DNA of 63,961 bases, filler included, from Klebsormidium nitens (Eukaryota; Plantae; Klebsormidiophyceae): the NCBI GenBank assembly GCA_000708835.1. It is 5 parts of 5 records of this genome, joined end to end, with 100 filler letters (N's around TTAATTAATTAA, not from the genome) between each part and the next. Parts side by side here need not be neighbours in the genome. Positions count along the whole stretch, not along the records: positions 1 to 21,614 come from DF237517.1; 4 more parts are not named here. One strand, 5' to 3'. Each line of letters starts with the position of its first letter. Position 1 is the first letter of the stretch. A model generated the notes under the pieces. That model was not told where the DNA came from and did not search any database. It worked only from the letters and a program-made list of their open reading frames with translations. Position numbers and translations under genes: made by a program. This document shows, in pieces, positions 1 through 21,614 of the stretch.

Positions 1-1
1 A

Positions 2-283
2 TTCAAGTTCCGGGCATTATTCTGGGCTCGTCTACTCCGGTCCATTTCGCCCGGGCAGTATCACCTACTATTCTGGTCCATGTTGTCCGTCCCAATAATT
101 TTGCTACTCTACGGCATGGACCGTGCATGGTTTCTCATATTGATGGCAGCAGCCACATGTGCCATTCTTCTTGCAGCAAAGAAGCGCGACCGAAGAGAGC
201 TGCTTGTGGACATTGACAGGTTTCCAGTGTATTGTGTTACTAACCTGGAAAAGACATCTGCAAACTGTCGAGCTCTCAGGTGA
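2..283 (+). CDS. 3' end of a hypothetical membrane protein (5' end outside window)
   Basis: Frame open from nt 2 to TGA at 281-283 (FKFRALFWARLL...MLSVPIILLLYGMDRAWFLILMAAATCAILLAAKKRDRR...). Two hydrophobic stretches followed by a basic patch. Overlaps the convergent stop of the next ORF by 8 nt. Confidence 0.45.
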   Translation, partial: FKFRALFWARLLRSISPGQYHLLFWSMLSVPIILLLYGMDRAWFLILMAAATCAILLAAKKRDRRELLVDIDRFPVYCVTNLEKTSANCRALR

Positions 284-3200
284 GCTTTGGGAGCAATCTA
301 TCAAGTGCAACGATTGCTGCACGTTTCTGGGAAATATGTGACTTTTCTCGCTCGATGAGCAATCCCAGTGCTACCGCGTCACTCCCCTGCAACCCGTGGA
401 TGATTGTGAGAGGGGCAATCTCACCTGCAGGACCACCCCCCTGCAGTCTCCCTTGCTTTGTGAGAATGGTGGTGACAGCAATCGGTGCTCGGGTGAGCTC
501 TTGAGGAATGGGTATGTCGTGGACCCTCTGTGTCATAGTTGCGGGAACCTGTCCGCGTGCAGCTTGTTTTGCAGCCTTGCCATAGTAAAGGGACCGTTTA
601 TCATTGGGTGAGAATGCTGTCCAGCCAGAGCTTCTTGTGGGTGCTGCGGGGCTAACACGCTTGAGCTCAGTGCTTGGTGGTGTAACAACAGCTGCTTGCA
701 GTGCTTCTTGCCAATTGCGAATCCCTGACTTTCCTGGCTGAGTGGCTGCAATCATGTGCTTGCCTGGCAGCACGGGGTTGGTTCCAGAGCTCGTAGTTTC
801 TTGCTGCTGCTTGGCCCTCTGCGCCATGTTTTCTCTCCATTGTTGCTCTATGGCGTTCAGCCTTTCTCTTCTTTTCCTGTTCTGTTCATTCTCGACCTTT
901 TGCGCCCGTTCTCTGTAAGCATTCATCGCCTGCTTCTGGGCCATCTCTTTATTCAATTCTTCTTGCAGATTTCTTATACCCTCATCTTCTTTCCCTTGCT
1001 GTTTGACCCGTTTCAATTCATTCTTGAGCTTCTGGGCCTTGTCAGAGCGTTCTTTCGCGGCCTGCTTGTTGGCCCTATTCTGTACATTTCTACTCTCTTG
1101 CTGTTGCCTGTCCTTCTGCTCATTCTGTTCTGCAACAAACCCTCCAGTACGGACTTGCTTGTTGGAATCACTAGTTGCAGTTCTTCTGTCTCCTTTCCTG
1201 TAGCCCCAAGGAGAGGACCAGCCCTTGAACCAGCTGGACGCTTGTTTCGAGCTCCCGTCACCACCAGAGTCCCTTTCACTCTCGTGCTGAGCCTTCTGTG
1301 CTCTCCCCTTCCACCAAGTGACAAACCCTCCAGATTGCTTGTTGGACTCATTTGTTGGACTACTTGTGTTCCCTTGCCTTTGGCCCCAGCCCTTGAACCA
1401 ACTGGACGCCTGTTTTGAGCTTCCGTCAACGTCAGAATTTGTTTTAATCCTCGTGTACCCTGTTGTTCGGCCCCCAAAGAGAGACCAGCTGCTCGGCTTT
1501 TCTGTCTTGCGTGCACGATTGCTTCCTTGAGAGAATTGATTCAAGAGAGGCTTGCGATTATTGTGCTTCTTGAATGCGAGTGACCTTTCCAGCTTTCCCA
1601 CCGGGCCTCTGCTGCCTAAACGGCTTTCTGTGGTGCTTCCCTGAGGAGTTGTAAAAGTCGAGCCAATGTCCAGTTGAGGCCCTGGATTGTCGTGCTTATT
1701 CGAGGCGAGTTTTCCCACCGGCCCTCTGTTGCCTGAACGTGCGCGAAGCTTACTATACTCTCTCAATCGGATTGGAGGTAGATTTGAAGACCCCCTATCC
1801 TGAAAGGGAGGGGCAGTGAAAGTGTTTGGCATTCGGTCTTCAGCACGTCGTTTTCTGAGCGGAGTGACGATGGGACCAATCAATGACGGCAGATCCTCAT
1901 GGAGTCCAGACGAGCGGTTACGTGGAAGGGGGGCTATGGGAGGTTCATTATCGAAAAGTCCTTGACCTCGTAATCTGAGTGGAGTGGACATCTTATCAAT
2001 AGGGGGAGGAAGATCATTCGCAAGCGATTCAACTTGATATTTATGTCGGGTTTTTTGAGGTGTGGTGGCAGTGACACTGTTCATGGGTGGAAGGTCGTCA
2101 AAGGAAAGACCAACCCGCCTCGTCCGCAAGGTAGGGACTCTCAGGTTGCCTGTTGGTGGAAGATCCTCCACGAAACTAGAGCGCCTCTTTCTCATTGGTG
2201 GCACCAAGATATTGCCCGGTGTTGGCAGGTTAGGAGATTCAAAACCTGGCAGCTTTATGGCACGTGGCCGGTAGGGCGGGGCCGCAGGCTTGTACGGAGC
2301 AGGCAAGTTCTCAGTAGCTGTTGGATGTCGTTCACGCAGGTAAACGCGATCGAACAGCGGGTGACCCTTGCGGGGCATCGGGAGCTCGTTCTCAACCAGC
2401 TTGGGCTCCAGATGATTATCCCACTCGTCCTCATCGGTCACAGGCAAAGCGCCAACTTCATAGAAGTAGGGGCGAGGTCGAAGTTTTGGGAATGACGGGC
2501 GTTCAAGCCTGAGCTGCTCCAGCCTTTGCACCTCCTCCCTCTCATCGTTGTTTGCTAGCTTTGCTAGATCTGTCTCTTGTAAGCTGTTGTAGATGTTGTT
2601 GTCAATCGTCCGCACTTCCGCCCCACGTTTTCTCGCGGTGGGCGGCTGCGGTTCCTGATAGTCGGGCAGGGTGGCATCTATCTGCGACGGCCTCTTACCA
2701 TGAGAGCTCTTGAGCAGCCGTAAGCTGCTCCTCACGTTCGGGGCGCTTGGCTTGAAGAGTGGGTTGTTGTGACTGGTTACCACCGCTCCGCCAAGATTTC
2801 GTCGAGGTGCCGGGACGGACACGGAGTGCTGTTGGGCACTGTTTTCAAAGAGTGGGTTGTTCCGGGCCGCCCCTGCCAGTGCAATTGCTTTCGCAGGCTG
2901 CCTATCATTGTTTTGCTTGAGTGCTCTATCCACGGCACCCCTTTGGTCCAATTCAATCTGGCTCACGTTCTGAGTGCTTGAGGTTGGTTCGGGAGCCACG
3001 TTGTGGACAGGTTGGTGGATCGGATTGTTCTTCTTCTTCCCCTTTCCTTGCTTGCTGAGCTCCCGGCCCATTGCAGCTCTCTCTCCCAGTGCAATCTGTC
3101 TGCGCAAGGTGGCTGCCTCCTCTTCATTGAATGCATGGAGCCTTTTCCGTCCAGCATCAATTGCATCTTGAAGCTCTTTGTCTTTCTTCTGTTTCTCTCG

Positions 3201-3356
3201 TGCGCTCAGCCTACTCTGAAGCTTTTCCTTATCCCACTTCTCCTTGTTCTTCACAGCTCTCCTATACTGAGCGTCTAATTCAGCACGTTTGTCAGATCTC
3301 GCGCTCTGGACCTCCAACCCTTTCTCGTTGCGAGCCTTTTTTTGCATCGGGGCCAT
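276..3356 (-). CDS. Hypothetical 1026-aa intronless, low-complexity/coiled-coil protein with internal repeats
   Basis: Uninterrupted 3.1-kb ORF. K/E/Q/R-rich helical segments near both ends, a Pro-rich middle with recurring DLPP-like motifs, and duplicated DGSSKQASSWFKGW (1218-1263, 1386-1430) and RGPVGKL (1594, 1711). No recognisable family. Confidence 0.75.
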   Translation of the reverse strand: MAPMQKKARNEKGLEVQSARSDKRAELDAQYRRAVKNKEKWDKEKLQSRLSAREKQKKDKELQDAIDAGRKRLHAFNEEEAATLRRQIALGERAAMGRELSKQGKGKKKNNPIHQPVHNVAPEPTSSTQNVSQIELDQRGAVDRALKQNNDRQPAKAIALAGAARNNPLFENSAQQHSVSVPAPRRNLGGAVVTSHNNPLFKPSAPNVRSSLRLLKSSHGKRPSQIDATLPDYQEPQPPTARKRGAEVRTIDNNIYNSLQETDLAKLANNDEREEVQRLEQLRLERPSFPKLRPRPYFYEVGALPVTDEDEWDNHLEPKLVENELPMPRKGHPLFDRVYLRERHPTATENLPAPYKPAAPPYRPRAIKLPGFESPNLPTPGNILVPPMRKRRSSFVEDLPPTGNLRVPTLRTRRVGLSFDDLPPMNSVTATTPQKTRHKYQVESLANDLPPPIDKMSTPLRLRGQGLFDNEPPIAPLPRNRSSGLHEDLPSLIGPIVTPLRKRRAEDRMPNTFTAPPFQDRGSSNLPPIRLREYSKLRARSGNRGPVGKLASNKHDNPGPQLDIGSTFTTPQGSTTESRLGSRGPVGKLERSLAFKKHNNRKPLLNQFSQGSNRARKTEKPSSWSLFGGRTTGYTRIKTNSDVDGSSKQASSWFKGWGQRQGNTSSPTNESNKQSGGFVTWWKGRAQKAQHESERDSGGDGSSKQASSWFKGWSSPWGYRKGDRRTATSDSNKQVRTGGFVAEQNEQKDRQQQESRNVQNRANKQAAKERSDKAQKLKNELKRVKQQGKEDEGIRNLQEELNKEMAQKQAMNAYRERAQKVENEQNRKRRERLNAIEQQWRENMAQRAKQQQETTSSGTNPVLPGKHMIAATQPGKSGIRNWQEALQAAVVTPPSTELKRVSPAAPTRSSGWTAFSPNDKRSLYYGKAAKQAARGQVPATMTQRVHDIPIPQELTRAPIAVTTILTKQGRLQGGGPAGEIAPLTIIHGLQGSDAVALGLLIEREKSHISQKRAAIVALDRLLPKLT

Positions 3357-3406
3357 CCACCTCCTGCAATAAGTGAGAGGAAATTGAGGAAGTAGGCAGT
3401 GGAAGT

Positions 3407-4228
3407 CTACGGTTCACCAGTACTTTCAATCATTAGTTCGTGAAGCACGGCACCAATTATGGACCCGCTCAGTGGTGCAATCACATGGACCCAAGCATCT
3501 TTCCAGCCTGCCGTGAATGTTGCAATTGCAAGACTCCGTGCGGGGTTGACAGTACCATCAGCGAATGGAGACACCGCCACCATGCTTGCAGTCATCAGAA
3601 AGCCCATGATAACAGGAGCCGCAGGGTTTTGCACACCCTTCTTGGCTCGAAGCCCCATGGATGTGATTGTGAGGATGCATGCTGCAATCAGTTCCAGCAA
3701 GAAAGCCCTTTCGAGCGACCATGCATGGAGGCGGTTGGTAGAAAGGGAGACAGGGTATGCTACTACTGCAAGCCCGGTCGCTCCAAAGGATGCGGCGCAT
3801 TGTGCCAATATCATGTACATGGCTCGTAGCATGCTCAACCGTCCCGTTATGGCGTAGGCAAATGTCAAGGATGGGTTGCAGTGCCCCACTCCATTGGTGG
3901 CACCCAAGGCGGTGCCTACGGACAGTGCGAGGCCGTTTGAAAGGCCCGATGCGAGGAGTGCCGATGTGCTCTGGATCCTAGAGTCGGGGCTCAGCCCACA
4001 TGCAATTACTGATCCGACACCCAAGTACACAAACATGAACGTTGCAATGAATTCTGTAGATACTGCCTGCCATGCACCACCTGTGACAGCAGCCGTTTGC
4101 TCATGAATCCTACGAAAGAATCTGAGGCCTCTGGCGGGCACAGGGCTTGGAGGCGGGCTGTAAGATGGTGCAGGGGCAGGCTTCTTAGTCTCTGGGGTAA
4201 GCGGCACGTGATTGAACTCAGCTGCCAT
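3407..4228 (-). CDS. Major intrinsic protein (aquaporin), TIP-like, intronless
   Basis: 273 aa with the MIP signatures EFIATFMFVYLGVG (helix 1), GHCNPSLTFA (loop B, NPS) and GTVNPARSLA (loop E, NPA-R), plus WVHVIAPLSG near the C-terminus. Six hydrophobic segments. Confidence 0.95.
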   Translation of the reverse strand: MAAEFNHVPLTPETKKPAPAPSYSPPPSPVPARGLRFFRRIHEQTAAVTGGAWQAVSTEFIATFMFVYLGVGSVIACGLSPDSRIQSTSALLASGLSNGLALSVGTALGATNGVGHCNPSLTFAYAITGRLSMLRAMYMILAQCAASFGATGLAVVAYPVSLSTNRLHAWSLERAFLLELIAACILTITSMGLRAKKGVQNPAAPVIMGFLMTASMVAVSPFADGTVNPARSLAIATFTAGWKDAWVHVIAPLSGSIIGAVLHELMIESTGEP

Positions 4229-4320: not shown

Positions 4321-5367
4321 TCAGACCACCGACCCCTGCCCGCTGGATGCTCCTTGCGTAATGCGCGCCAGCTGTGCCAATGGGTCATCGGCAAAGTCGA
4401 CGCGATAACTCTCCGTCCAGTGAACGCCCTGTGTGTGCACAGCATTCCTGGCCGTCACCAGGCGATGCGGGTACACAAGGACGGCCGCGGAAGACTTGGC
4501 AGCGTTGCCGGCAAGACTATGATCGGCCAGTATGCTCTGCGGGATCACGTAGCAGCAGTGCAAGGTCTTGGGGGCCTCGGGGAGTTGGATGCAGAGGAAG
4601 TCAAAATCACCGACTTCATACTGCCTCTGTGTCTTCTTCCCGTTCACTCTGCCTGCTTGCTTATGGCAACCCACGGAGTAGTAATCAGATTTACGATTGT
4701 ATCGGGCCAACTTCAGCTGCCACCTCCTGCCATCCACGATATAATCGTAGCTCAGGAACTCGGCTGGAGGGTCCATGAAAAGGACCGGTAACGAGCGCTG
4801 AAGACGCTGGAAGGCGTTGTACTCCGCCAAGGCGTTCCGTTCCGTGGGCTTCTCGTGGTCCCTTGGGCTGCGAAGCACGTAGTTGCTAGAGCCTGATAGG
4901 GCTGCCATATAGATTGTGTAGATTGCGTCTGCCAGGGTGGCGAGCTTTATCTCTTGTAGTCTGTCAGACCTCATGCGCCGCCGGAGGGTTCCTGGAATTG
5001 TAACCGTCATACTGATCACCCTGGATCCATCCGCAAGCCAGATGCGCGGGGTCTCCAAGTGGAGGGCCACAAAGATCATCAACAAGCCAGCGTATCCATT
5101 TGTCCGTCCGAAGATATAGTACTCATAGCCCGCATTCAGTTCTAATGTCACACCCGTGGTTTTGACCTGTACTCCAAGTGCGGGCGAACCAGGTGTATAT
5201 ACGCAGAAGTCAGCAAGAGCCTTCTCAAACGACTTGTGGAACTTGAGACGGCCGTCCTCCTGAAGTGCACGCGAGATCAGTCGCAGACCTTGCGCTTCTT
5301 TGTTGTGGTTGTTCCCGTAGGTTGCCAGATTGGCGGCCCGTGCAACGGTGATAGCAGCAGCATCCAT
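4321..5367 (-). CDS. Protein with two tandem PD-(D/E)XK-like nuclease domains (QxK variant)
   Basis: Motif set 1: KEAQG...LADFCVY...GVQVKTT. Motif set 2: LAEYNAF...SYDYIVDGRRWQLKLA, followed by YEVGDFDFLCIQLP...CYVIP, which is typical of the post-catalytic strands of small restriction-like nucleases. Confidence 0.65.
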   Translation of the reverse strand: MDAAAITVARAANLATYGNNHNKEAQGLRLISRALQEDGRLKFHKSFEKALADFCVYTPGSPALGVQVKTTGVTLELNAGYEYYIFGRTNGYAGLLMIFVALHLETPRIWLADGSRVISMTVTIPGTLRRRMRSDRLQEIKLATLADAIYTIYMAALSGSSNYVLRSPRDHEKPTERNALAEYNAFQRLQRSLPVLFMDPPAEFLSYDYIVDGRRWQLKLARYNRKSDYYSVGCHKQAGRVNGKKTQRQYEVGDFDFLCIQLPEAPKTLHCCYVIPQSILADHSLAGNAAKSSAAVLVYPHRLVTARNAVHTQGVHWTESYRVDFADDPLAQLARITQGASSGQGSVV

Positions 5368-5602: not shown

Positions 5603-6589
5603 TTAAAAGTCCAACTCATCGGTCCTAATGTTTGACATGTCTGCGAAACTCTGTCCACCGACCCCTGCGCGTTGATAGGCGGACACCTTCCTCTCAAAGA
5701 AGTTTGCTTTTCCATCGAGCGCGATCAGGTCCATAAAACTGAAAGGGTTGGTGGTGCCGTATATTGCCTCGTACCCCAGCTGCTGGCAGAGCCTGTCTGC
5801 AACAAACTCAATGTACTCCGACATCAGGGAAGCATTGATTCCAATAAGACTGCAGGGTAGCGCCTCACAGATAAAAGCCTGCTCAATCTTCACAGCATCA
5901 GTGACAATGTCCCTCACGGTCTGAGCTGGCAGCTTCTCCTGGAGGGTCTCGTAGAGCTGGCACGCGAAGTCGGTGTGCAGCCCCTCATCGCGGCTGATGA
6001 GCTCATTGGCAAAACAAAGGCCGGGCATGAGTCCCCGCTTCTTCAGCCAGAAGATGGCGCAGAATGACCCCGAGAAGTGGATACCCTCCACGCATGCAAA
6101 GGCAACGAGCCTCTCTCCAAACGACCGTCCGCGCTCGATCCACTTGGTTGCCCAGTCCGCCTTCCTCTGGACACATGGGATTGAGTCGATGGCGCCGAAC
6201 ATCTCGTCCTTCTCCTGAGAGTCCTTCACGTAGGCATCAATGAGGAGGCTATACTGCTCAGAGTGGATGGTCTCAATCGCCATCTGCATGGAGTAGAATG
6301 CCCGTGCTTCTGGAATCTGCACCTCTGCAAAGAACCTGAGGGCCAGGTTTTCCAGGACAATCCCGTCACTGGCAGCGAAGAAGGCCAACACTCGAGAGAT
6401 GAAGAACCTCTCCTTGCTAGTGAGCTTCTCCCAGTGGGGCAGGTCATCGCTGAGGTCCACCTCCTCTGTTGTCCAGAAGCTAGCCACAGCCTCCTTGTAC
6501 AGTTTCCATAGCTCATCGTACTTGACTGGGAACATTGTGAACCTGGCGTTGGATGCAGCAAGGATGGGCTCTGCGGGGGCAGGCTCCAT
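5603..6589 (-). CDS. RNR2: Ribonucleoside-diphosphate reductase small (beta/R2) subunit, class Ia, intronless
   Basis: [34 protein letters not shown] (ExxH plus radical Tyr), [38 protein letters not shown], and a C-terminal R1-binding DF tail. Short N-terminus. Confidence 0.97.
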
Positions 6590-6763
6590 GTTGTCTCACT
6601 GGTGGGATTTAATCACTTGTGCGAACGAGCCTGCCTTATGTCTCCTGATTTGCGGGGCGCTGCTGTTGCGCACTCTGGCTGCTCTCGGCGACCTCTGGGG
6701 ACGGGTGTTGCAATTAACCATCTGACTTTGGCTACTTAAGTGATCGCACAAGTTCCCTCCGTT

Positions 6764-6856
6764 ATCGACGGTGTACCGGCGGGTGGTTTTGAGAGATCGA
6801 CGGGCACTCGCGGGTGGCCGTACGTGATCGACGGCCAACTTGCAGGTAATCGACGG
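6764..6856. promoter_or_regulatory. Cluster of four ATCGACGG boxes (plus two GCGGGTGG) upstream of RNR2
   Basis: ATCGACGG at 6764, 6796, 6827 and 6849; GCGGGTGG lies between the first three copies. 6794-6802 reads AGATCGACG. The cluster is 175-270 nt upstream of the RNR2 ATG. Confidence 0.45.
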
Positions 6857-7142
6857 TCGATTTTGGGGGGCAGCTCAGGCTTTAATTAACTAACAGGTGT
6901 CTACAGGTGATCAACGGCTCACTCACGGGTATAATCAAGTGATGCATGGTGAGCAGCGGTGCAGTGTCAGAAGCGTATGTGCCTGTTGAGAGGGAATTGT
7001 GGACACTGGGGCTAGCACTTGGATGCAGCCAAGCCAGGACAGAGTCGAGTGTTGAAAAGTCTGTACCAAGGCCGTTCACCACAGTTCAAGCCCCCTTTGA
7101 CTCAATGGGCGCCAGAAGCGCTTCCGACTGGATGGAAATGGG

Positions 7143-7879
7143 ATGGACTGGGGTGGTATTGATGCTCTTGCACCAAAACCTGGCGTCCTGCCTCCATTCA
7201 AGCTCTTGGTCGCCTCAATGATGCAAGAGGCATGGCCTTATGTCACCAGGCTGGCATCGGAGTTTGACGACATCTTCTTCCTGTAAGTCCCGCTTTTCTG
7301 TGTTTGCAATCCTGCCTTGTTGAGCTGTGCAGTTCTTCAGCCTTTAGCTGCATGCTGCAGCATCTTTCAGTGCCTCAAGCACTGAATCCATCCTGCAGGA
7401 TGCCGTTCACCTGGAAACAGCTGGTCAAGCCCAAAGACCAGAGGACGCCAGCTGACGTTCCAATCATCGCTGTACCGATCGATGCTGAGGACTATCCAGT
7501 GCCAAACCGTGTGCCAGGCTCGATACTGTTCAGGATTGAGGTGCAAAATCGGCTCAGCGACCGCGACAATGGCTCCCTATGGGTTGAGCTGCCAGCTGAG
7601 AAGGACTTTCCGCTCGCAGATCTATCAGACAGGTGGGAGGTGACAGGTAGCAAAGTAGAACTTGATGTTACGCAAGTAGACAGGCTGCTTGGCAGAATGT
7701 CTCTTGTCACTGACTCCTGCTTGGTCTGCAATCAGCATACCAAACAAAGGTGCTCACCAGTGCAAGCAGGCAGCATTTTGCTCCAAAGCCTGCTTCAAAA
7801 TAGCTTGGAAGGGACACAAAGAAGCTTGTTTGAGGTCAGCAGCACGCAAGTAGTAAGAGAGTCGGGTGAGACTGAGTGA
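7143..7879 (+). CDS. Hypothetical spliced gene (exons ~7143-7282 and 7399-7879)
   Basis: CT|GTAAGT donor at 7283 and CCTGCAG|G acceptor at 7398 form a 116-nt phase-2 intron. It joins MDWGGIDALAPKPGVLPPFKLLVASMMQEAWPYVTRLASEFDDIFFL in frame to MPFTWKQLVKP... The 5' end is uncertain. Confidence 0.45.
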
Positions 7880-7948
7880 AGGTGTACTCGTTGCTCGATG
7901 CATCCTCTGTCATGTCTCTTTTCTTCCATCATGATAGGGTGCCGCGTG

Positions 7949-13900: not shown

Positions 13901-14150
13901 AGAGAGGAATCAGGCAGGCATACTGACCGTTTTTGCAAAGAATCTGAACGGATCTTATGGTGGGTCAAAGGCTGGTTATCTGAGGATATTCTACAGTTCA
14001 TTAGCAGGTGATGTGAACAACGCTTTCGGGGTGATTGAATCATATGCACCACGCATGACGACGTTTTCCGCCACTGCCAACGGGCAGGGCTGCACAATAG
14101 CCACTGATGCTGATTGTGCGGTTGCATACAAGTTCGAAGGTGCATGCTGA
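7949..14150 (+). CDS. Giant Gly/Ser/Thr-rich virion fibre/tail-fibre-like protein 1 (~2000 aa, interrupted by two N gaps)
   Basis: ORF 7898-11962 and ORF 11934-14150 carry the same repeats on both sides of gap 11479-11930. The two gap flanks share ACTGTGACAGCTGGTAC and join in frame. Contains VGVGTSNPQASLHV, many P-x(4-5)-YDLG-x(4)-W motifs, and 90-aa and 31-aa tandem repeats. Likely start MYTAKSY at 7949. Confidence 0.8.
8822..10080 (+). repeat. 270-bp (90-aa) tandem repeat within fibre 1
   Basis: Unit starts ATGACCCCCTTCA at 8822/9092 and again at 9842 after gap 9236-9783. Unit peptide: DPLQSLYTSVASIKDELSVDEGGTITLSADVLSGSNGTYDLGSDSNTW... Confidence 0.92.
11070..12370 (+). repeat. 93-bp (31-aa) tandem repeat with 186-bp higher-order periodicity within fibre 1
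   Basis: Unit GPLTVAGGLTSSNGLSVAAGTASFGSNVAVS. GGCCCGTTGAC recurs at 11138 and 11324 (186 bp). The array spans gap 11479-11930. Confidence 0.92.
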
Positions 14151-14234
14151 TTCCAATTCTTATCAGTCGGAGGAGTCATATCTGCAAAATGGCCTCTCTA
14201 CCAAACACTCGCTCCTTATGCGATGCATAAGCCT

Positions 14235-14683: not shown

Positions 14684-14880
14684 GCTGATTGATGCCTTTT
14701 ATTGCAGAACCGGTCACAGGCCTCAAGAATGCTCTTGATGTGGTGGAGGCCAACCGCTAGTTCTAAGTTGAAATTCGTGCTGTTCCTAGCTCCTAAGCCA
14801 CAATCTTCTGAGCCTGTGGATCTTTCTACTGCTGGGAATTTTCTTCCAAGGCTGTCCCAGAAGCCAGCACTCGCAACCTC

Positions 14881-17800
14881 CTATGCCACCCTTTGCTCAA
14901 GGACAGCTAATCTACCAACGAGTGATGCTACCATATCCTTGAGCTCTTTGATCTCGCGGTCTTTTTGTGCCCGAAGCTCCTTTACGGCTTCGACCATGTT
15001 TGCGTGAAAGGCATCCCCGATGCCGTATGACTTGACCCCATCCGGGCACAGCTCTTCTTCCTCCTTGCACTGTGCTGTTCCCGCACAGGACAGCTCCGGA
15101 AAGGCCTCGTCGATTTCTTGGGCGATAAAGCCCGTCACGCCCTTGTCGCCGTTGTGAGCTTCCGGGAATTTGTAGTCGAAGACGCGCCCCGTCATCCCGC
15201 ATATCCTGTCTAGCGCCCCGGTGACGGGCCGGATGTTCGTCTTGACGCGCTTATCGGAACTCATGGCTGCGATCGCTGTGCTCTGTGCGTGGATCACACC
15301 GCCGTTATCGAAATAGACTCGCTTGGTGAAGAAAGACGTCGTGTATTGACTGGCCGTCCCACTGCTCTGTTGAAAAAAATTCAGGCAAAAGCCCCCGGTT
15401 GTTAACTTCCACTTTGCATTGACTACATCATCGAGGACGATGCCTGCCCCTGCGGAAGACGCTCCCAGGATGAGCGTGTTGTCGTCCGTGTTTGGTGTTG
15501 CAAACATGTGAAACGGAGCCGCTGGAGTGAATGCCGTGGTGGAGTTTGCGGTCATGCCGCACGCTCCGGTAGAGTAGTGCTTGCCGCTCGTATACAAGTC
15601 CACCCAAGGAAGTGCAGACGTCCCTAGACAGTAGCCGGACCCTCCAACCGTAGTTGGAGTGATGGTCCCAAAGTCGCACGTGTTTCCGTTTGCACTGATG
15701 GCTCCGGTGTTGGCTTGGTTGATCCAGACGTTGCCAGTCCGTGCAGAGGACGATCCGATGGTGCCAGTCACCAATAGGTTGGTTTGCACTCTCGCAGAAC
15801 CGTTGATGTCGAGGTGGTACTGGGGTGACGTTGTGTAGAGGCCGAAATTCCCGTTGCCACATGCATTAAAGGTCTGCGTTCCAACAGAGTAACCGTACAT
15901 TCCAAACGAGGCATAGTTGCTCGAAGACCCCGCACCTGCAGTATTGTTGAAGCCGACATAACCGCAGTTGTTGGCCGAGAGTGCAGTCCCGAAGTCGGCG
16001 AGCAGATAGTTCCCAGCCGCCAACGACGATGCCAAGAAGGTCACCATGTTGCCAATACTCACGACCGCTGGTGAGGTGACCCCGAGCCCCGCTGATGAGG
16101 TCAATCCTGCACACATGACGCTACCAGAGCTAGAGATGGAGCCGCAGGATATCGACCCGCTGTTGGAGCTGCCAGACACCGTCCACACATTTGAGCCGGT
16201 GGACCACGTGTAACCCCCAAGACTCGTGATTGGGGCGTTCATGGTGGTGGTGTCAGTGACGTTGTTCAGATATGAGAGGACGTCCACCGTCACGAGCGTG
16301 CCGCTCGGGGCTGCTGTGTTGGAGGTGGTACTGGGCTCATATAGAGTGTTCTGTTGCTGGTCGCACTCTACACATAGATCCCAGATGCAAAAATTCTGCC
16401 GATTGACGACATAAATGTCGAAAGTCGTGCCAGAGTTTGTGGTGTAGAGAGCAATATTGCAGTAGCTCCTCGCGGTCGCATAGGGGCCCGTTAGGGACCC
16501 GTTGATGGACAGGCCTCCCCTGGAAACGAGAGTCACGTCAATAGTTGCAACTTGGCCCGATGTATACCCGCCAATATGCCCGGTTATGCGCACCCCGCCA
16601 GCAGTTCCCCCAGAGCTATAGTTGCCAAGAGACGCGAGCTTGTAGTATGCATTGCTAGCGTTGACCAGGCCGGTTGCACCCATGGAGATAGCGTTCCAAA
16701 AGCGTCTCGGTAGTGCCAGGTATGTGCCCCTCAGGCTAGCCGCAGTCACTGGTCCACATGATATCGCTCCTGTGGAGTGCGTGACGTTGACTTGCCCGTT
16801 TGCCATCGAAACATTCCCAGTGCTCAAAGCTACCTGATAAGGCCGGAGGCTGTTGAATTGTCCGGTGGAGTCGCCCGGGTTTGTCATGAGCTGATAGTAC
16901 GTCCCACCGTCCGAGTATTGGATGAATCCAGTGCTGCCAAAGGTACATTGCAGGAAGCCGTTCACGCCGCTGTTGCTGGTGGCCCAAAGAATTGGGGTTG
17001 CAATGCTGGTCGATACGTTGACGTTGCTGGAGAATGTTGCAGTTCCCGTGTGTGATGTGGTGCCAGTAAAGGTGCAAGCTCCGGCCGACAGCGCCCCACT
17101 GATAGCAGCCGAACCGGTCACATTCAACGTACTTGATCCGGTCCCGCTGGTGCCCACTGTCAAAGAACCCAAAAAATTGGCATTACCGGTACGTGTGTCA
17201 AACATGTGCCTTTCCGTGCTATCCCAAGTACACCTGAGACTGATTCCCCACCAGGAAGCCAGACCTCCTTCGTTGCTCCCCCCGTAACCCGTACCATCGT
17301 AATTGTTCGTCCACAGTTTAACGCCCATATTTGGATCAGCCCCGCTGTATAGGGATACTTGTGCTGCTTTCACACTCAGATTGGATCCAGATCCCATGGT
17401 GACAGTGTTTGCTGTCAACTGGCCCGTCCCTGCATTGATGTTGCTGTTGCTCGTCGTTATCGCACCACAAGTGATCGCAGTGGTCCCGAAACCGCCCACC
17501 GAAAATGCGCCCGAATTTATCTTGCTGGCATCCAAACTCGGAATCTGGGACGCCGTGAAGGTACCCGTGGTCGATGCGGCAGCGATGGAGCCCGCCGGAA
17601 GACTTATTGTTCCAGCGGAGACGGTCAGCCCGTTGGATGAGGTTAGGCCGCTGACAACGACGAGGTTGCTGCTGCATGTAGTAGTGCCGCTGAAGGTGGC
17701 TGCAGCGGTTGATAGCGTTCCTGTCGTAACAAGATTTGTGCTCCCGAATGCCCCGATAGAAAACGTTCCTGAATTTATGTTGCTGGCATTGAGGTTTGGA

Positions 17801-20724
17801 ATCTGAGAGGCCGCAAAGGTGCCGGTTGTTGCGGCTGCAGCAATACTGCTATTTGGGAAGGACACAGTCCCAGCAACGGTGATGCCATTATCGAATTGAG
17901 CTGTGCCGCCCGAAACGTGCAGCATGTTGGCCGGAGAGACGGTCCCAATGCCCAGACGGTTGTTGTACCAGTCCATGAAGCACGGGCCTCCCAAGGCCGA
18001 TGGCTTTGGTTGTGTCTGATCGTAGGCGAGATTGGATCCCGGGATGTCCGTGGCCGCGAACGTCGTGCCGGTGGTCTGAGCCCATTGCAACTTGAATTGC
18101 TGACCCCCGCCGCCCGAGTTCTGGTATGCAATCAGAATGTTCTTCCAACCTGCACTTGCAAAGGTCGTGCTTTGTGACACGGTACCGGCTGTGTAACCAG
18201 TCTGCCCAAGAACGAGGCTGCCATCGATAAAGACTCTGATGTTGTCGTCGACGCCGACCGATGAGAATGTGTAGGTCGCTGCTGCCGGGATGTTGATGTA
18301 ACCGCTGATGTTCAGGTTGTAGAAAGCATTCAGACCACTAAAAATATTAGACAGAGATGCGTAACTATGCACGTTGGCTGTATCCAGTGGGCCAGCACCG
18401 CCTGTCAAAGTTTTTGTCAGGATAAACGAGCCCATGGACCTTGCCGTGCCACTCACGATATTGATCACGCTGGCAATCAGGCCGCCCGTAGTAGCGGCAT
18501 TGAAGGCCCCGGAAGAATTCACGGTCCCAGCCACGTCCAGCTGATACTGAGGGCTCTTGGTCCCGATACCCACGTAGTTGCTAGTGCTGTTGATGCAGAT
18601 GGCAGACGCGCCAACACCGCTCTGGAGCAGCAGGTTGCCGGCGTAAGCCCGTAGGATTGCATCGCCTGTCGCAGCATCCGTGCTGTAGGCCCCTGTACCT
18701 CCCGCCAAGCCGAATTGTGCAGTGTTTGTAGTCGCTCCACTGATGAGGCCAAACTGAGTACTCGAAGCATTGGAGGCCGACACGTTTACTGCATGCGTTC
18801 CTACCGAGAAGGCTCCGGAAGTGATCTGTGATGCAGGGAGACTTCCGATAGCAAAGGCCGAAATGGACGCACTCGGCAGAGATACTGAGCCTGCCGAAAC
18901 CGTCAGGCCGTTGGATGCCGTCAAGAGGCCTGCCACTGCTGCAGGTCCAGTAATGGAGACGTTACTGCTGAACGTTCCTGTTCCGGATACTGTCAATGCG
19001 TTGGACCCTGTAATAGCACCCCCGACCGACAGGTTGCTGGACAAGTAAGCACTCCGCCATGCGGTTGCAGAGGCACCCAGGTCGTAAGTTGCACTGGTAG
19101 TGGGATTGTGCTGACCGCTCGTTATAGAACCGCTTCCCACAGTGATGTTGCTGTTTCCAGTGCTCATGGTCGTGCAAGTCAGTGCCCCCAGAGTGCTAGC
19201 CCCAGCCCCCAGGGTTCCCGTAGTGCTGATATTCGTACTACCGAACGAGCCCACCGAAAACGTGCCCGAAGTGATCTGAGATGCAGGGAGATTTCCCACA
19301 GAAGAGGCCGAGATAGACCCACTTGGCAGAGAGACCGTCCCTCCAGAGATTGTCAGGCCGTTGGATCCAGTAATAGCACCGCCTACGGTTATGTTGCTCG
19401 ATAGGTAAGCACTCCTCCACGCCGTGCCGGACGCCCCCAGGTCGTATGTTGCTGTGGCTGATGGGTTGAGCTGCCCGCTGGTGATACTGCCGCTCAGTAT
19501 CGATCCAGAGTTCGAAGATCCGATAAGATTCCAAACGGGATTTCCGGACGACGCGGAATTCGAAAAGCTGAAGTTGTTGAAGCTCGTCGTTACCGTTCCT
19601 GACGAGAATTCGGATGAGGTAGTGAGGATGCTCAGCACCGATGAAGTCACGAGGGTGCCAGTAGGGGCTGTTATGGCCGTCGAGGTGGGTTCGTAGAGGG
19701 TCGTACCGAAGCCACCCTCGACGCTGAGGTCCCAGACCGAGAACTGTGCGGGGTTGTAATAGTAGACGCTGTATTGCCCGTTAGTCTCCATATAAACGAC
19801 GATATCAGCGCGCTGCTTGGCCCCTGAAATGAAGCCTTGGATCGTGCCTTTCACATAAAAGTTGCCTCGAGATACTATGGTGCAGTCGACCGTTGCCGTC
19901 TGTGAGTTCCCGAAACCACCGAGCTGCCCGACGATCCGAAGACCCTGTCCGCTGCCAGTATCACTGCTATCGAGCAGAGTTGCCAACTTGAAGTAGCTGT
20001 TGGCGGCTATCGACTGGATTCCGAGCGCCCCTGCGTTCCAAAACTTTCTCTGCAGGCCGACGAAATTACTTGCCGTTATCGTGCCTGACAGATATGCATT
20101 CCTCCATGTGGTTCCAGAAGCACCCAGGTCGTAAGTTGCACTGGTAGTGGGATTGTGCTGACCGCTCGTTATAGAACCGCTTTCCACAGTGATATTGCTG
20201 TTTCCAGTGCTGATCGTCGTGCAAGTCAGTGCCCCCAGAGTGCTAGCCCCAGCCCCCAGGGTTCCCGTAGTGCTGATATTCGTACTACCGAACGAGCCCA
20301 CCGAAAACGTGCCCGAAGTGATCTGAGATGCGGGTATACTTCCAAAGGACGAGGCCGTAATGGACCCATTCGGCAATGAAACGGATCCTGCCGAGACAGT
20401 CAGTCCGTTGGATGCCGTCAAGAGGCCCGCCACTGAGAGGTTTGAGCTGAAGTTTCCAGTACTTGCAAAGACGTTTGACCATTGATTCGAGGATGTTCCC
20501 AGGGTATACGCGTTGGTTGCATTTGGCGTCACAGAACTGCCAAAAGAACCTACAGAAAAGACCCCCGAAGTCAGGTTTGACGCCGACAGGTTGGGGATGT
20601 TTGAGGATGCCAGCACGCCAGAGAGGGATGCTGCCGAGACAGACCCAGCTGGCAGACTCACCGTTCCCGAAGGTACAGTCAGCCCATTGGCTGTCAGGGT
20701 ATTTGCAAAGAGATTGAAGGACAT
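14881..20724 (-). CDS. Giant virion fibre/tailspike-like protein 2 (~1947 aa) with PA14 domain and C-terminal peptidase S74 intramolecular chaperone
   Basis: Intronless ORF, probable start MSFNLFAN at 20724. C-terminus SSDKRVKTNIRPVTGALDRICGMTGRVFDYK...GFIAQEIDEAFPEL...MVEAVKEL plus a coiled coil = S74/ICA. YNLNISGYINIPAAATYTFSSVGVDDNIRVFIDG...IAYQNSGGG...LQW (~18080-18320) = PA14. VGIGTKSPQYQLDVAG and LGIGTVSPANMLHV are fibre motifs. Confidence 0.9.
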   Translation of the reverse strand: MSFNLFANTLTANGLTVPSGTVSLPAGSVSAASLSGVLASSNIPNLSASNLTSGVFSVGSFGSSVTPNATNAYTLGTSSNQWSNVFASTGNFSSNLSVAGLLTASNGLTVSAGSVSLPNGSITASSFGSIPASQITSGTFSVGSFGSTNISTTGTLGAGASTLGALTCTTISTGNSNITVESGSITSGQHNPTTSATYDLGASGTTWRNAYLSGTITASNFVGLQRKFWNAGALGIQSIAANSYFKLATLLDSSDTGSGQGLRIVGQLGGFGNSQTATVDCTIVSRGNFYVKGTIQGFISGAKQRADIVVYMETNGQYSVYYYNPAQFSVWDLSVEGGFGTTLYEPTSTAITAPTGTLVTSSVLSILTTSSEFSSGTVTTSFNNFSFSNSASSGNPVWNLIGSSNSGSILSGSITSGQLNPSATATYDLGASGTAWRSAYLSSNITVGGAITGSNGLTISGGTVSLPSGSISASSVGNLPASQITSGTFSVGSFGSTNISTTGTLGAGASTLGALTCTTMSTGNSNITVGSGSITSGQHNPTTSATYDLGASATAWRSAYLSSNLSVGGAITGSNALTVSGTGTFSSNVSITGPAAVAGLLTASNGLTVSAGSVSLPSASISAFAIGSLPASQITSGAFSVGTHAVNVSASNASSTQFGLISGATTNTAQFGLAGGTGAYSTDAATGDAILRAYAGNLLLQSGVGASAICINSTSNYVGIGTKSPQYQLDVAGTVNSSGAFNAATTGGLIASVINIVSGTARSMGSFILTKTLTGGAGPLDTANVHSYASLSNIFSGLNAFYNLNISGYINIPAAATYTFSSVGVDDNIRVFIDGSLVLGQTGYTAGTVSQSTTFASAGWKNILIAYQNSGGGGQQFKLQWAQTTGTTFAATDIPGSNLAYDQTQPKPSALGGPCFMDWYNNRLGIGTVSPANMLHVSGGTAQFDNGITVAGTVSFPNSSIAAAATTGTFAASQIPNLNASNINSGTFSIGAFGSTNLVTTGTLSTAAATFSGTTTCSSNLVVVSGLTSSNGLTVSAGTISLPAGSIAAASTTGTFTASQIPSLDASKINSGAFSVGGFGTTAITCGAITTSNSNINAGTGQLTANTVTMGSGSNLSVKAAQVSLYSGADPNMGVKLWTNNYDGTGYGGSNEGGLASWWGISLRCTWDSTERHMFDTRTGNANFLGSLTVGTSGTGSSTLNVTGSAAISGALSAGACTFTGTTSHTGTATFSSNVNVSTSIATPILWATSNSGVNGFLQCTFGSTGFIQYSDGGTYYQLMTNPGDSTGQFNSLRPYQVALSTGNVSMANGQVNVTHSTGAISCGPVTAASLRGTYLALPRRFWNAISMGATGLVNASNAYYKLASLGNYSSGGTAGGVRITGHIGGYTSGQVATIDVTLVSRGGLSINGSLTGPYATARSYCNIALYTTNSGTTFDIYVVNRQNFCIWDLCVECDQQQNTLYEPSTTSNTAAPSGTLVTVDVLSYLNNVTDTTTMNAPITSLGGYTWSTGSNVWTVSGSSNSGSISCGSISSSGSVMCAGLTSSAGLGVTSPAVVSIGNMVTFLASSLAAGNYLLADFGTALSANNCGYVGFNNTAGAGSSSNYASFGMYGYSVGTQTFNACGNGNFGLYTTSPQYHLDINGSARVQTNLLVTGTIGSSSARTGNVWINQANTGAISANGNTCDFGTITPTTVGGSGYCLGTSALPWVDLYTSGKHYSTGACGMTANSTTAFTPAAPFHMFATPNTDDNTLILGASSAGAGIVLDDVVNAKWKLTTGGFCLNFFQQSSGTASQYTTSFFTKRVYFDNGGVIHAQSTAIAAMSSDKRVKTNIRPVTGALDRICGMTGRVFDYKFPEAHNGDKGVTGFIAQEIDEAFPELSCAGTAQCKEEEELCPDGVKSYGIGDAFHANMVEAVKELRAQKDREIKELKDMVASLVGRLAVLEQRVA
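19073..20331. repeat. Two near-identical 212-bp direct repeats inside fibre 2 (19073-19284 and 20120-20331)
   Basis: By-eye alignment shows 4 mismatches. Offset 1047 bp (349 codons, in frame). Confidence 0.9.
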
Positions 20725-20836
20725 CCTCCTTCCTACTAGCCACCAAGATATAATCACAAGGCACTTAGGAGTGTGTTGAAAGAAGACTTTCATGGCGCCG
20801 TGCTTGTTCTTGAAGAGCTGTCATGTCGCATGCATC

Positions 20837-21256
20837 ATGGACACCGACCTAGCTCAGGTCTCAAAGTACAAGGTTCAGCTTCCAATCATGTGGAAACGAG
20901 CTTACAAGGCTCGCTTCAACATAGATCTGCTCGAGGAAGCACGGAAGGTGGTTCAGGATGTAGAAGGAGTTCACCTGGCGGTGCTCAAAGGCCGTTCACT
21001 GCTAGTGTATCTCGGGGCGCCCCACATGGCTGAAGAGGTCATGAACGAGATCAGGGCTGAGAGGGCGCTGCGCGAAGCGGCTGTAACTTGGGAACGTGAG
21101 GCACACGTGTGCAACAGCCTGCAGTGGGCCATCATCTCGAGGTTCTTGAAGGATGACGAGTTCAAGACCCACGCTTTCATTGCTTATACTTCCGAGCATG
21201 GCTCTGAAGCAGCCATGAGAGCACTATACAACGTCAGGGTTTGGAGTCCTCAATGA
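20837..21256 (+). CDS. Hypothetical intronless protein (~139 aa)
   Basis: ORF 20792-21256, likely start MDTDLAQ at 20837. Divergent from fibre 2, protein-like composition, no recognised family. Confidence 0.55.
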   Translation: MDTDLAQVSKYKVQLPIMWKRAYKARFNIDLLEEARKVVQDVEGVHLAVLKGRSLLVYLGAPHMAEEVMNEIRAERALREAAVTWEREAHVCNSLQWAIISRFLKDDEFKTHAFIAYTSEHGSEAAMRALYNVRVWSPQ

Positions 21257-21614
21257 TGCGTTCTGCCTGGCCCGTTTGAATTCTGACACACTACCAGGAG
21301 TCGAATGGTCAAGATAATCGAAGCGCCCTTGCAGAGAGTGCTGCTTGTCTCTACACATGTGGGGCAAACAACAGGATGTCAAAGTTTGCACGTGGGCTAA
21401 CATGCTTGAAATGTTGAGAAGGTTGACAACGGTAGAAACCAGGTCTGTGTCGAAGTTGAAGGAACTGGAGGAATTTGTACAAAGGTGAAGAAACAGGAGA
21501 TGTACAACGTTAATCCTGACGTCTTGGAACTTGCCTGCATGTGTTGTGTTGTGTTGTGAACATCACCCGCGAAGCCTGTCAACCTCTTGCGTTCAGTTGG
21601 ACCGCTTCATTAGC

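Follow-up and report, generated by a model that had tools for sequence, protein, structure and literature searches.

Does the densely coded 21.6-kb piece at the start of this window derive from a large DNA virus, and if it does, is it viral DNA inserted in an algal nuclear genome or a virus that was assembled together with the alga? The window is the whole stretch of DNA that was analysed, 63,961 nucleotides in length, and the features of the piece are listed in Table 1. ORFs occupy ~89% of the piece on both strands (ORF map), in agreement with the tight packing described in an earlier sequence-only reading, and all genes of the piece can be read without introns. ORFs of 1970 and of more than 2000 codons cannot be the product of chance at 54% GC. 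The earlier statement that most genes are intact is correct, as one gene of ~9, the MYND-finger gene, is broken. The GC content is 54% in the piece compared with 52-58% across all close relatives. The gene fragment at the left edge has no Pfam match, and 34 aa of it are 50% identical to an ORF of the related locus L084. The 154-aa ORF has no family match even at an E value of 5 and no counterpart in related loci. The MSV199/AntA-like gene of the sequence-only reading was not recovered, and MSV199, AntA, KilA and Bro domains are absent from every ORF of the piece even at E values up to 5. A Bro-N gene adjoins a fibre gene on the related contig L087 and has no counterpart in the piece.

Table 1. 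Features of the 21.6-kb piece, with positions along the window.
Feature	Position	Strand	Remarks
Gene fragment, 3' end, truncated by left edge	2..283	+	Frame open from edge; hydrophobic C-terminal region
1026-aa basic, proline-rich, low-complexity protein	276..3356	-	R+K 17%
MIP / aquaporin	3407..4228	-	Pfam MIP 6.5e-31; divergent
Tandem PD-(D/E)XK-like nuclease, 348 aa, two cores, single ORF	4321..5367	-	Homing-endonuclease-like
RNR small subunit (RNR2, class Ia beta)	5603..6589	-	Pfam 2e-109; apparently intact
MYND-zinc-finger gene with one frameshift	7304..7879	+	Pfam zf-MYND 7.4e-6, above cut-off
Fibre gene 1	7898..14150	+	One gene, three read pieces; PHROG tail-fibre matches
270-nt (90-aa) in-frame tandem repeat array, fibre 1	8810..10084	+	Encloses gap 1 (9236-9783)
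93/186-nt in-frame tandem repeat array, fibre 1	11084..12281	+	TRF; encloses gap 2 (11479-11929)
Beta-sandwich "knob" domain, fibre 1	13257..13811	+	35% identical to fibre 2 copies
Fibre gene 2, 1970 codons	14881..20793	-	Pfam; probable start Met at codon 24
Peptidase_S74 intramolecular chaperone, fibre 2	15091..15258	-	Pfam 2e-12, 47.6 bits vs cut-off 22
Knob domain copy 2, fibre 2	16189..16743	-	AF2 pLDDT 76
Gp34_trimer-like segment, fibre 2	16837-17052	-	Precedes knob copy 2
PA14 domain (carbohydrate-binding type), fibre 2	18064..18351	-	Pfam 2.6e-7, above cut-off
Knob domain copy 1, fibre 2	19531..20085	-	41% identical to copy 2
154-aa ORF	20792..21256	+	Divergent from fibre 2

The RNR small subunit named in the sequence-only reading is borne out by its Pfam match and by an end-to-end alignment with human p53R2 in the PDB (1e-129), with full agreement in the metal-ligand and tyrosyl-radical motifs. 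Its closest matches are metagenomic only, at 73-82% identity, followed by plants at ~64% and giant-virus bins of IMG/VR at 57-66%; the protein is no closer to the cellular copy of K. nitens (64.7%) than to that of any other plant. In an NJ tree, which is a distance tree of this single protein, the window sequence and six metagenomic sequences form a clade (100/100 bootstraps) outside the Viridiplantae clade, within which the K. nitens cellular RNR2 falls. The window clade is joined to a group of giant-virus bins at 45% support only. Of the 120 best matches, every one whose source is named comes from a eukaryote; bacteria and phages are not represented. RNR2 is not a host copy.

The aquaporin call likewise stands on its Pfam MIP match. 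The first pore box of the protein reads NPS and the second reads NPA followed by R. Only ~6 close relatives were found (47-67% identity), the next best matches reach 27-31%, and no cellular relative exceeds 31%. Among solved structures, the profile of the clade matches plant TIP2;1 best (7e-29) and GlpF at just 1e-8. The MIP is a member of a small virus-linked clade. The 1026-aa basic protein, for which no match was found in Pfam, PHROG or NCBIfam, lies directly downstream of the MIP gene in a conserved position. It has an orthologue in L137 (37% identity, ~480 aa, E 4e-53) and weak matches in L003 and L084. The pair of MIP and long basic protein occurs at 5 loci: it is found in L084 and L137, and the longer order fibre 1, RNR2, MIP and long basic protein recurs in L003 and L085.

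Two genes of the piece do not follow this conserved order. The 1.3-kb stretch 6590-7897, which includes the MYND gene, is missing from relatives, and the spacing between RNR2 and the fibre gene is 50-180 bp only in L003 and L085. The zf-MYND match comes from the second-frame piece and covers the second half of the profile only. The second gene, earlier described as a tandem nuclease, is indeed one ORF with two PD-(D/E)XK-like cores. Its match to Pfam PDDEXK_5 is weak (0.0025) and under the curated cut-off. In an alignment of 30 sequences D53..Q67-x-K69 and Q217-x-K219 are invariant and D208 is nearly invariant. Foldseek places I-Ssp6803I at the top for the AF2 model (pLDDT 90), with E 1e-7 and TM 0.68 on the target, followed by single-chain PvuII and EcoRV. 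The window nuclease resembles I-Ssp6803I (PDB 2ost; Pfam PDDEXK_5) in fold and in its behaviour as an inserted mobile gene. However, I-Ssp6803I has one small subunit whereas the window nuclease has two domains per chain, like engineered single-chain PvuII, and both of its cores, unlike I-Ssp6803I, read D...Q-x-K. The gene is missing at the RNR2/MIP junction in L003 and L085, and its closest homologue sits in L090 within an ABC1 kinase gene that is interrupted. The resemblance to I-Ssp6803I and the absence from this junction in relatives make it probable that the gene was inserted between RNR2 and MIP as a mobile unit, and it is therefore a weak marker of lineage.

Two ~6-kb fibre genes had been proposed and both are confirmed, the first with two assembly gaps. 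Fibre 1 probably starts at the Met of codon 18. Its frame is open to all four gap edges, and the three pieces are therefore one gene. At gap 1, the right 200 nt are 96.5% identical to the left 200 nt (blastn) in the same register, with a copy offset of 270 nt. At gap 2, the final 18 nt before the gap are the same as the initial 18 nt after it, and the codon phase is unchanged; the apparent frame shift here is a product of the estimated gap length and not of the gene. The C-terminal 130 aa of fibre 1 are conserved, and orthologues are found in L003 (1354-aa protein, C-terminus 67% identical), L085 and L087 (1895-aa protein, 55%). Of the two fibres, fibre 2 alone is S74-bearing, and Pfam detects no Peptidase_S74 domain in fibre 1.

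The S74 domain of fibre 2 is followed by a coiled-coil tail and has in common with the distal subunit of the phage S16 long tail fibre (6f45) a Ser-Asp-x-Arg-x-Lys domain start. Fibre 2 also matches phage Mu tail fibre S in the PDB (3.9e-6), and its PA14 domain matches a PDB PA14 protein (0.0016). Knob copy 2 finds phage minor tail, tail fibre and gp37 proteins in BFVD (best E 1.7e-8, TM 0.61) and only weak tailspike N-terminal domain matches in the PDB. As in phage S74 fibres and tailspikes (endosialidase type; S16 gp37, PDB 6f45; Mu fibre S, PDB 5yvq), S74 is C-terminal in fibre 2, and phage and window fibres are alike in the Ser...Lys start of S74, a Gp34_trimer-like segment and knobs with a tail-protein fold. 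Unlike phage fibres, the window fibres are two to four times longer, lie among eukaryotic-virus genes, and have a PA14 domain and long Ser/Gly/Thr/Ala-rich repeats. Fibre 2 is 50% identical to K. nitens KFL_009040090, and its last 295 aa are 76% identical to a JGI contig protein. The closest resemblance of the fibres being to phage tail fibres was counted against a large-DNA-virus origin of the piece. So were the absence from the piece of hallmark genes (major capsid protein, PolB, A32 ATPase, VLTF3 and D5; Pfam and PHROG searches) and of a promoter motif common to the genes or an AT-rich intergenic signature.

No relatives of the MIP, the fibre C-termini or the nuclease were found in IMG/VR, and the giant-virus link therefore rests on the neighbours of homologues on other contigs. 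These include topoisomerase II, Erv1/Alr, HIRAN and kinase genes on L001, the RNR large subunit, RNase III and UvrD helicase on L086 (K. nitens DF237853.1), both fibre types with Bro-N, patatin, MscS and dNK on L087, DUF5760, OTU and UvrD on L089 (K. nitens DF237583.1), and a PBCV-1-type minor capsid protein P8 on L090 (5.7e-27). Chloroviruses (PBCV-1, MT325, ATCV-1; Phycodnaviridae) are algal large DNA viruses with RNR and membrane channels including MIP (PMC6163359), and PBCV-derived DUF families accompany P8 on contigs with homologues of the window nuclease. The chlorovirus MIP is an aquaglyceroporin, whereas the window MIP clade matches orthodox TIP and PIP aquaporins best and GlpF poorly. 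No chlorovirus protein is among the named matches of RNR2, MIP, fibre or other window proteins. We know of no ~2000-residue fibre with an S74 chaperone in PBCV-1.

The sole named homologues of window proteins are from K. nitens. The proposed link to a streptophyte alga is supported on this ground, and not by the earlier argument from the other blocks, which are unrelated pieces. The homologues lie on NCLDV-like scaffolds of K. nitens/flaccidum NIES-2285 (GCA_000708835.1; DF237853.1 and DF237583.1 among them), which Gallot-Lavallee & Blanc 2017 described, with an S74 fibre 50% identical in aa and 77% in nt in the chaperone region, and a tandem nuclease 63% identical in aa. Scaffolds and piece resemble each other in a GC content of ~55%, in the dense packing of virus-type genes and in their connection to streptophytes. 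The sequences are distant, so the piece represents a different virus of the lineage and not the element found on those scaffolds. Among the named matches, none from K. nitens corresponds to the module of RNR2, MIP and long protein, and no protein of the piece is present in the protein collection. "Phycodnaviridae"-type NCLDV core genes have been described from K. flaccidum, K. subtile, Interfilum and Entransia (PMC5294986). According to PMC11244446, giant viruses have become endogenous in Klebsormidium, and viral genes of K. nitens are reported as methylated in PMC12344493.

A large-DNA-virus origin, as proposed in the sequence-only reading, is supported because the RNR2 phylogeny, the conserved gene order and the giant-virus neighbours of homologues point to it. 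The piece is very probably part of the genome of a large dsDNA algal virus (Nucleocytoviricota, probably phycodnavirus-like), truncated on either side; besides the piece, this lineage is known from small virus-like scaffolds of the K. nitens assembly and from a few recent metagenome contigs. An even chance is given to the reading first put forward, namely that a giant-virus element was recently integrated into the nuclear DNA of a klebsormidiophycean or a comparable alga and has kept nearly all genes open. K. nitens provides a precedent with homologues on scaffolds annotated as nuclear, the assembly from which the piece was taken is scaffolded and has N gaps, and one gene is frameshifted. The observed/expected CpG of 0.76 in the piece, a moderate depletion, and the TpG/CpA excess of 1.28 are as expected after methylation; however, metagenomic relatives, integrated or not, show the same CpG depletion (0.77-0.88). 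The 8 intact genes of ~9, including two 6-kb ORFs, fit a replicating virus equally well. The piece holds no host-virus junction or host gene, both ends being virus-like or unassigned, and the contrast with intron-rich host genes of blocks 2-5 cannot be used because these blocks are unrelated pieces. In green algae and Amoebidium, giant endogenous viral elements form large blocks of giant-virus genes that are often methylated and in part decayed (PMC11244446, PMC12344493), whereas the piece has no host junction and shows only one broken gene.

It is possible, if less probable, that the DNA is viral without being endogenous and was assembled together with the alga from a free or episomal virus, or from a virus that infects some other organism of the culture. 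The intact and densely packed genes are compatible with this, and relatives occur on separate metagenome contigs of up to 78 kb; a more distant nuclease-bearing contig (L091) is circular with 470 kb. The K. nitens homologues are on scaffolds of 24-52 kb, where the genes in the stretches examined (up to 21 kb) are all virus-like or unassigned. Publications, however, treat the Klebsormidium sequences as insertions (PMC5294986, PMC11244446). The one broken gene also argues against a free virus, and the piece shows no sign of a free genome end or circle.

It is very improbable that these are host genes, or long-domesticated virus-derived genes, and not viral DNA as such. RNR2 belongs to the eukaryotic class Ia and shares ~65% identity with plant proteins, and the MIP clade profile is closest to plant TIP and PIP aquaporins among solved structures; yet RNR2 falls outside Viridiplantae, the MIP lacks close cellular relatives, no gene requires an intron to be read, and the same gene order is found on virus-like contigs. 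We know of no cellular role for 2000-aa fibres that carry an S74 chaperone and phage-type knobs, which also counts against host genes. Bacterial or phage contamination, suggested by the PHROG, Mu fibre S, S16 gp37 chaperone and BFVD matches of the fibres, is scarcely credible given the eukaryotic sources of the named RNR2 matches, the topoisomerase II, Erv1/Alr and PBCV-type minor capsid protein genes that adjoin homologues, the MYND finger, the K. nitens origin of the named fibre homologues, and the absence of tRNAs and bacterial RNA families from the piece.

For the viral fragment, the gene identities, gap continuity, synteny, separate RNR2 clade and nuclease fold are established by the analysis, and all roles in infection are ones that we infer. 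Read outward from its divergent point, the conserved module has fibre 1 in one direction and RNR2, aquaporin and long basic protein in the other, and the second, S74-bearing fibre gene adjoins it. The tandem PD-(D/E)XK gene would be a selfish homing-type endonuclease inserted between the RNR2 and aquaporin genes, and the MYND-finger gene may be decaying. RNR2, together with a large subunit encoded elsewhere, could supply deoxynucleotides for viral DNA synthesis, and the aquaporin might make a membrane of the host, or one associated with the virion, more or less permeable to water at entry or release. Both ~2000-residue fibres would form trimers, aided in fibre 2 by the C-terminal S74 chaperone that would then cleave itself off, and may attach the particle to the alga through PA14 and knob domains that bind cell-wall carbohydrate. 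Giant-virus DNA in Klebsormidium has already been published, and the piece is a further member of this lineage, which has so far been named from Klebsormidium insertions only and whose name is presumptive.

The piece at positions 1-21614 (DF237517.1) has a GC content of 54% without a strong compositional break, and open reading frames (ORFs) on both strands occupy approximately 89% of it. The tightly packed, intron-free coding described in the sequence-only reading is thus borne out, as are the ribonucleotide reductase small subunit (RNR2), the aquaporin (major intrinsic protein, MIP), the tandem nuclease and the two fibre genes of about 6 kb that it had named. The MSV199/AntA-like gene that it had also listed was not recovered: no ORF matched the MSV199, AntA, KilA-N or Bro families of Pfam, at E-values up to 5 for the small ORFs and up to 0.01 for the large ones. 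Its argument from a contrast with intron-rich host genes in blocks 2-5 of the joined stretch falls as well, because those blocks are unrelated pieces. The features of the piece are collected in the following table.

Features of the piece of DF237517.1, with positions along the joined stretch
Feature	Position	Strand	Family match
3' tail of a gene truncated at the left edge	2-283	+	
1026-aa basic low-complexity protein	276-3356	-	
Major intrinsic protein (aquaporin)	3407-4228	-	Pfam MIP, 6.5e-31
348-aa nuclease	4321-5367	-	weak Pfam PDDEXK_5, 0.0025, under its cut-off
RNR small subunit	5603-6589	-	Pfam Ribonuc_red_sm, 2e-109
1.3-kb stretch with MYND-finger ORF	6590-7897 (ORF 7304-7879)	+ (ORF)	
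Fibre gene 1	7898-14150	+	
Fibre gene 2	14881-20793	-	Pfam PA14, Gp34_trimer, Peptidase_S74
154-aa ORF, function unassigned	20792-21256	+	

Only one of the approximately nine genes is broken. The MYND-finger gene matches zf-MYND at 26.4 bits (cut-off 22.7) over the second half of the profile, and the first half is found in another frame, so that one frameshift separates them; all other genes read through. The two MYND frames and the pieces of fibre 1 were each searched separately, never as a joined, repaired or consensus sequence. The MYND gene lies within a stretch missing from relatives. Positions 6590-7303, which form part of this 1.3-kb segment that relatives lack between RNR2 and fibre 1, and positions 21257-21614 are without a convincing ORF, family match or counterpart in related loci. 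Scans of the piece for tRNA genes and Rfam families gave none, and a shared AT-rich promoter motif was not found, no 7-mer being enriched in 106 upstream regions from the piece and eight related loci, where upstream AT content is 49%. Residues 349-528 of the 1026-aa protein contain six to seven short, spaced motifs of acidic-Leu-Pro-Pro type, the number of which varies from 0 to 4 in the orthologues, and the protein also has a duplicated stretch reading Ser-Ser-Lys-Gln-Ala-Ser-Ser-Trp-Phe-Lys-Gly-Trp.

The piece is very probably of viral origin, and this reading is well supported. Dense, intron-free genes on both strands are combined with a metabolic gene, RNR2, whose clade stands apart from that of the host, and homologues of its genes are linked to core or typical genes of giant viruses on five other contigs (L001, L086, L087, L089 and L090). 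A bacterial or phage origin of the piece was rejected. Major capsid protein, PolB, A32 ATPase, VLTF3 and D5 primase-helicase were matched by no ORF of the piece; since it is just 21.6 kb long and truncated at both ends, this absence is no argument against the parent sequence belonging to Nucleocytoviricota.

The order of genes is shared with other contigs. In L003 (ENA) and L085 (Logan) it is kept, with fibre 1 on one strand and RNR2, MIP and the long 1026-aa protein on the other, and the pair of MIP and long protein is retained in two further contigs (L084 and L137), with the L137 protein 37% identical to the 1026-aa protein over approximately 480 residues. A 78-kb JGI contig whose RNR2 is 73% identical (L001) encodes topoisomerase II, Erv1/Alr, HIRAN and a kinase. 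The JGI sample of L001 also yielded L087, which has homologues of both fibres (55% and, at the C-terminus, 76%) together with a Bro-N gene beside a fibre gene, patatin, an MscS channel, dNK and an AAA ATPase; its Bro-N gene has no match anywhere in the piece. The contig with the closest nuclease homologue (L090) also encodes a minor capsid protein P8 of PBCV-1 type (5.7e-27), and a circular 470-kb contig (L091) has a nuclease homologue of 37% identity. The GC content of close relatives is 52-58%. No relatives came up in IMG/VR, which was scanned with the alignments of MIP and of the nuclease and with the C-termini of fibres 1 and 2. RNR2 and six further proteins of the piece, looked up by exact sequence, have no entry in the protein collection, and searching the literature for the relatives' sample accessions returned no publication.

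Several of these contigs show further features. In L084 (ENA ERZ26165376, ctg335110) an IS607-type pair at approximately 5965-8106 immediately follows the genes for MIP and the long protein and precedes a topoisomerase II gene; it comprises a serine resolvase with a MerR-type HTH and a TnpB/OrfB_IS605 protein whose TNB domain is Cas12f1-like. IS607-type transposons of this kind are known in giant viruses. In L001 and L002 (JGI 3300060284/5) the topoisomerase II frame is split over several ORFs; small repeated ORFs of 31 aa and one for an acetyltransferase intervene, an arrangement that could reflect introns, inteins or insertions. L091 (ENA ERZ25067825, ctg182639_35x_c) is circular, 470,663 bp long and covered 35x, has 64% GC in the 21-kb stretch examined, and encodes the PBCV-derived families DUF5672 and DUF5755, NAMPT and a lipase; it is a candidate for a complete giant-virus genome.

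Homologues within K. nitens itself support a link of the piece to streptophytes. Two named proteins, each of K. nitens, came out of the search with fibre 2. One of them, KFL_009040090, is encoded on the 24-kb record DF237853.1 (L086), where an RNR large subunit, RNase III and a UvrD helicase are its neighbours. A homologue of the nuclease, KFL_006340110 (63%), is found on DF237583.1 (L089) with DUF5760, OTU and UvrD. These virus-like copies differ from the piece, sharing with it 50-63% identity in their proteins and 70-77% DNA identity in their conserved genes, and by this measure the piece is a further, clearly different member beside them. The deposited gene models of L086 and L089 are not colinear with the translated DNA and are therefore spliced models; on intron-free viral DNA these may be an annotation artefact, and exact look-ups would then miss the true proteins.

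RNR2 matches Ribonuc_red_sm at 365.7 bits (cut-off 33.6) as a class Ia beta subunit; human p53R2 aligns with it along the entire length and has identical metal-ligand and radical-tyrosine motifs. Its top matches are metagenomic or raw-read contigs (73-82% identity), followed by plants and green algae at approximately 64% and giant-virus bins of IMG/VR at 57-66%. A distance tree of 54 sequences joins the RNR2 of the piece and six metagenomic sequences into one clade in 100 of 100 bootstraps. This clade lies outside the Viridiplantae clade that contains the cellular RNR2 of K. nitens, and a host paralogue was therefore rejected. The clade is joined weakly to one group of giant-virus bins (bootstrap 45).

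The MIP gene next in line scores 108 bits against Pfam (cut-off 25) and has two NPA-type boxes with an Arg after the second. The first box is NPS in the piece and NPA or NPV in relatives; the second is NPA-R. A conserved Cys immediately precedes the first pore box in all seven clade members. Approximately six close relatives are 47-67% identical, and the next best sequences are aquaporin-Z-like (27-31%). A scan of JGI metagenomes with the MIP alignment returned distant aquaporin-Z-like matches of at most 31%, plus two short partial matches at 37%; one locus from a human-gut metagenome, bacterial aquaporin-like, was left out of the analysis. Among solved structures, plant TIP2;1 scores highest against the clade profile (7e-29), PIPs and animal water channels come after it, and GlpF reaches only 7e-9. 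Given these best scores with TIP2;1 and PIPs and the poor score with GlpF, the MIP is, by sequence, an orthodox-type aquaporin. The chlorovirus MIP is by contrast an aquaglyceroporin (PMC6163359). An aquaglyceroporin of chlorovirus AQPV1 type was ruled out for the piece by the low GlpF score, by a score of 22.7 bits against the NCBIfam aquaglyceroporin model (cut-off 400), and by the MIP search, which gave no chlorovirus match.

The nuclease between MIP and RNR2 combines two conserved cores in one 348-aa protein. In an alignment of 30 sequences, D53..Q67-x-K69 is invariant in the first core, and Q217-x-K219 is invariant and D208 nearly so in the second; both cores have Q in the place where D or E is usual. 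The family comprises 135 representative clusters. Against PF11645 (PDDEXK_5) the protein scores 18.3 bits, below the cut-off of 26.1, and a search of PDB sequences with the nuclease profile gave no match. Its modelled fold is of the restriction-endonuclease-like type and closest to that of the PD-(D/E)XK homing endonuclease I-Ssp6803I: the AlphaFold model (pLDDT 90) has this enzyme (2ost) as its top Foldseek match (E 1e-7, probability 1.00, TM relative to the target 0.68), with single-chain PvuII and EcoRV as the next matches. The gene is missing at the RNR2-MIP junction in L003 and L085, so its presence at a conserved site varies, and its homologues occur in unrelated contexts. The closest one (65% aa), in L090 (ENA ERZ25039498, contig_112781), lies on the opposite strand inside an insertion in an ABC1/UbiB-type kinase gene; that gene has a single interruption, and its two ORF halves span consecutive parts of the Pfam profile. 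The genomic context of the K. nitens homologue differs from both. We read the nuclease as a free-standing, homing-type mobile endonuclease gene, with cleavage and homing as predicted activities.

Fibre 1 was read in three pieces separated by two assembly gaps. Gap 1 (9236-9783) interrupts a tandem repeat of 270 nt (90 residues); its right and left flanks of 200 nt are 96.5% identical, with a copy offset that is a multiple of three. Gap 2 (11479-11929) falls inside a 93/186-nt repeat, and the 18 nt before and after it are identical and in the same codon phase. The frame is open to all four gap edges, which together with the repeat register makes the three pieces one gene, and three separate fibre ORFs were rejected. 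The apparent frame change at gap 2 results only from the estimated gap length. Over its length fibre 1 shares 34-46% identity with its counterparts, and for the final 130 residues the identity with L003 is 67%. PDB sequence searches with the fibre 1 pieces gave no match.

Both fibres are long, rich in Ser, Gly, Thr and Ala, built from repeated short modules, and match phage tail-fibre PHROGs. Fibre 2 has two copies and fibre 1 has one copy of a domain of approximately 150 residues (35-41% identity), which is also found in all related fibres. The domain is modelled as a beta sandwich (pLDDT 76) that resembles the predicted structures of minor tail, tail fibre and gp37 proteins from phages (best E 1.7e-8, TM 0.61) and, among solved structures, weakly resembles the N-terminal domains of tailspikes. 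Fibre 2 in addition matches fibre S of phage Mu, contains a PA14 domain and ends in a Peptidase_S74 domain (47.6 bits, cut-off 22), which starts with the Ser-Asp-x-Arg-x-Lys motif also present in the distal fibre subunit of phage S16 (6f45). Of the two fibres, only fibre 2 carries S74; in fibre 1 no such domain was found with Pfam. Both proteins would be trimeric attachment fibres of the virion, and fibre 2 may mature through self-cleavage by its S74 chaperone. The convergent ends of the two genes are separated by a 730-bp spacer without ORF matches (14151-14880). The homologues of these two genes in L087 are instead arranged in tandem, with a 207-aa ORF and the Bro-N gene between them.

No host sequence was found within positions 1-21614. 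The CpG observed/expected ratio of the piece is 0.76, with an excess of TpG/CpA. Relatives that may be either integrated or free have similar ratios of 0.77-0.95, so CpG depletion, considered as a mark of integration, does not discriminate. Core genes of NCLDV of 'Phycodnaviridae' type, with other viral genes adjoining, have been described in the K. flaccidum genome, and core genes of the same type in transcriptomes of K. subtile, Interfilum and Entransia (Gallot-Lavallee & Blanc 2017, PMC5294986). Klebsormidium has also been placed among organisms with giant-virus endogenisation (Sarre et al. 2024, PMC11244446), and the viral fraction of K. nitens genes is enriched in methylation (2025 study, PMC12344493). 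Giant-virus DNA in Klebsormidium is thus an already known phenomenon.

To our knowledge, no virus of klebsormidiophycean or other streptophyte algae has been isolated so far. The piece and its metagenomic relatives might represent a living giant-virus lineage infecting klebsormidiophycean (streptophyte) algae, with a conserved orthodox aquaporin by RNR2 and two phage-style fibres of approximately 2000 residues. On this view the piece would be no old fossil: it would have integrated very recently, or it would be a resident genome that is not integrated. This proposal is tentative, and we consider it rather unlikely. Giant-virus DNA in Klebsormidium and other streptophytes being on record, what is new is gene-level detail for a poorly sampled lineage: a virus-linked clade of orthodox-type aquaporins in fixed order beside RNR2, a pair of very long fibres built from phage tail-fibre parts, and a family of tandem PD-(D/E)XK homing-type endonucleases moving about in these genomes. 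Host junctions on the parent scaffold would make the piece a further, almost intact insertion within a lineage near the land plants, whereas their absence would point to a resident or co-cultured virus worth finding.
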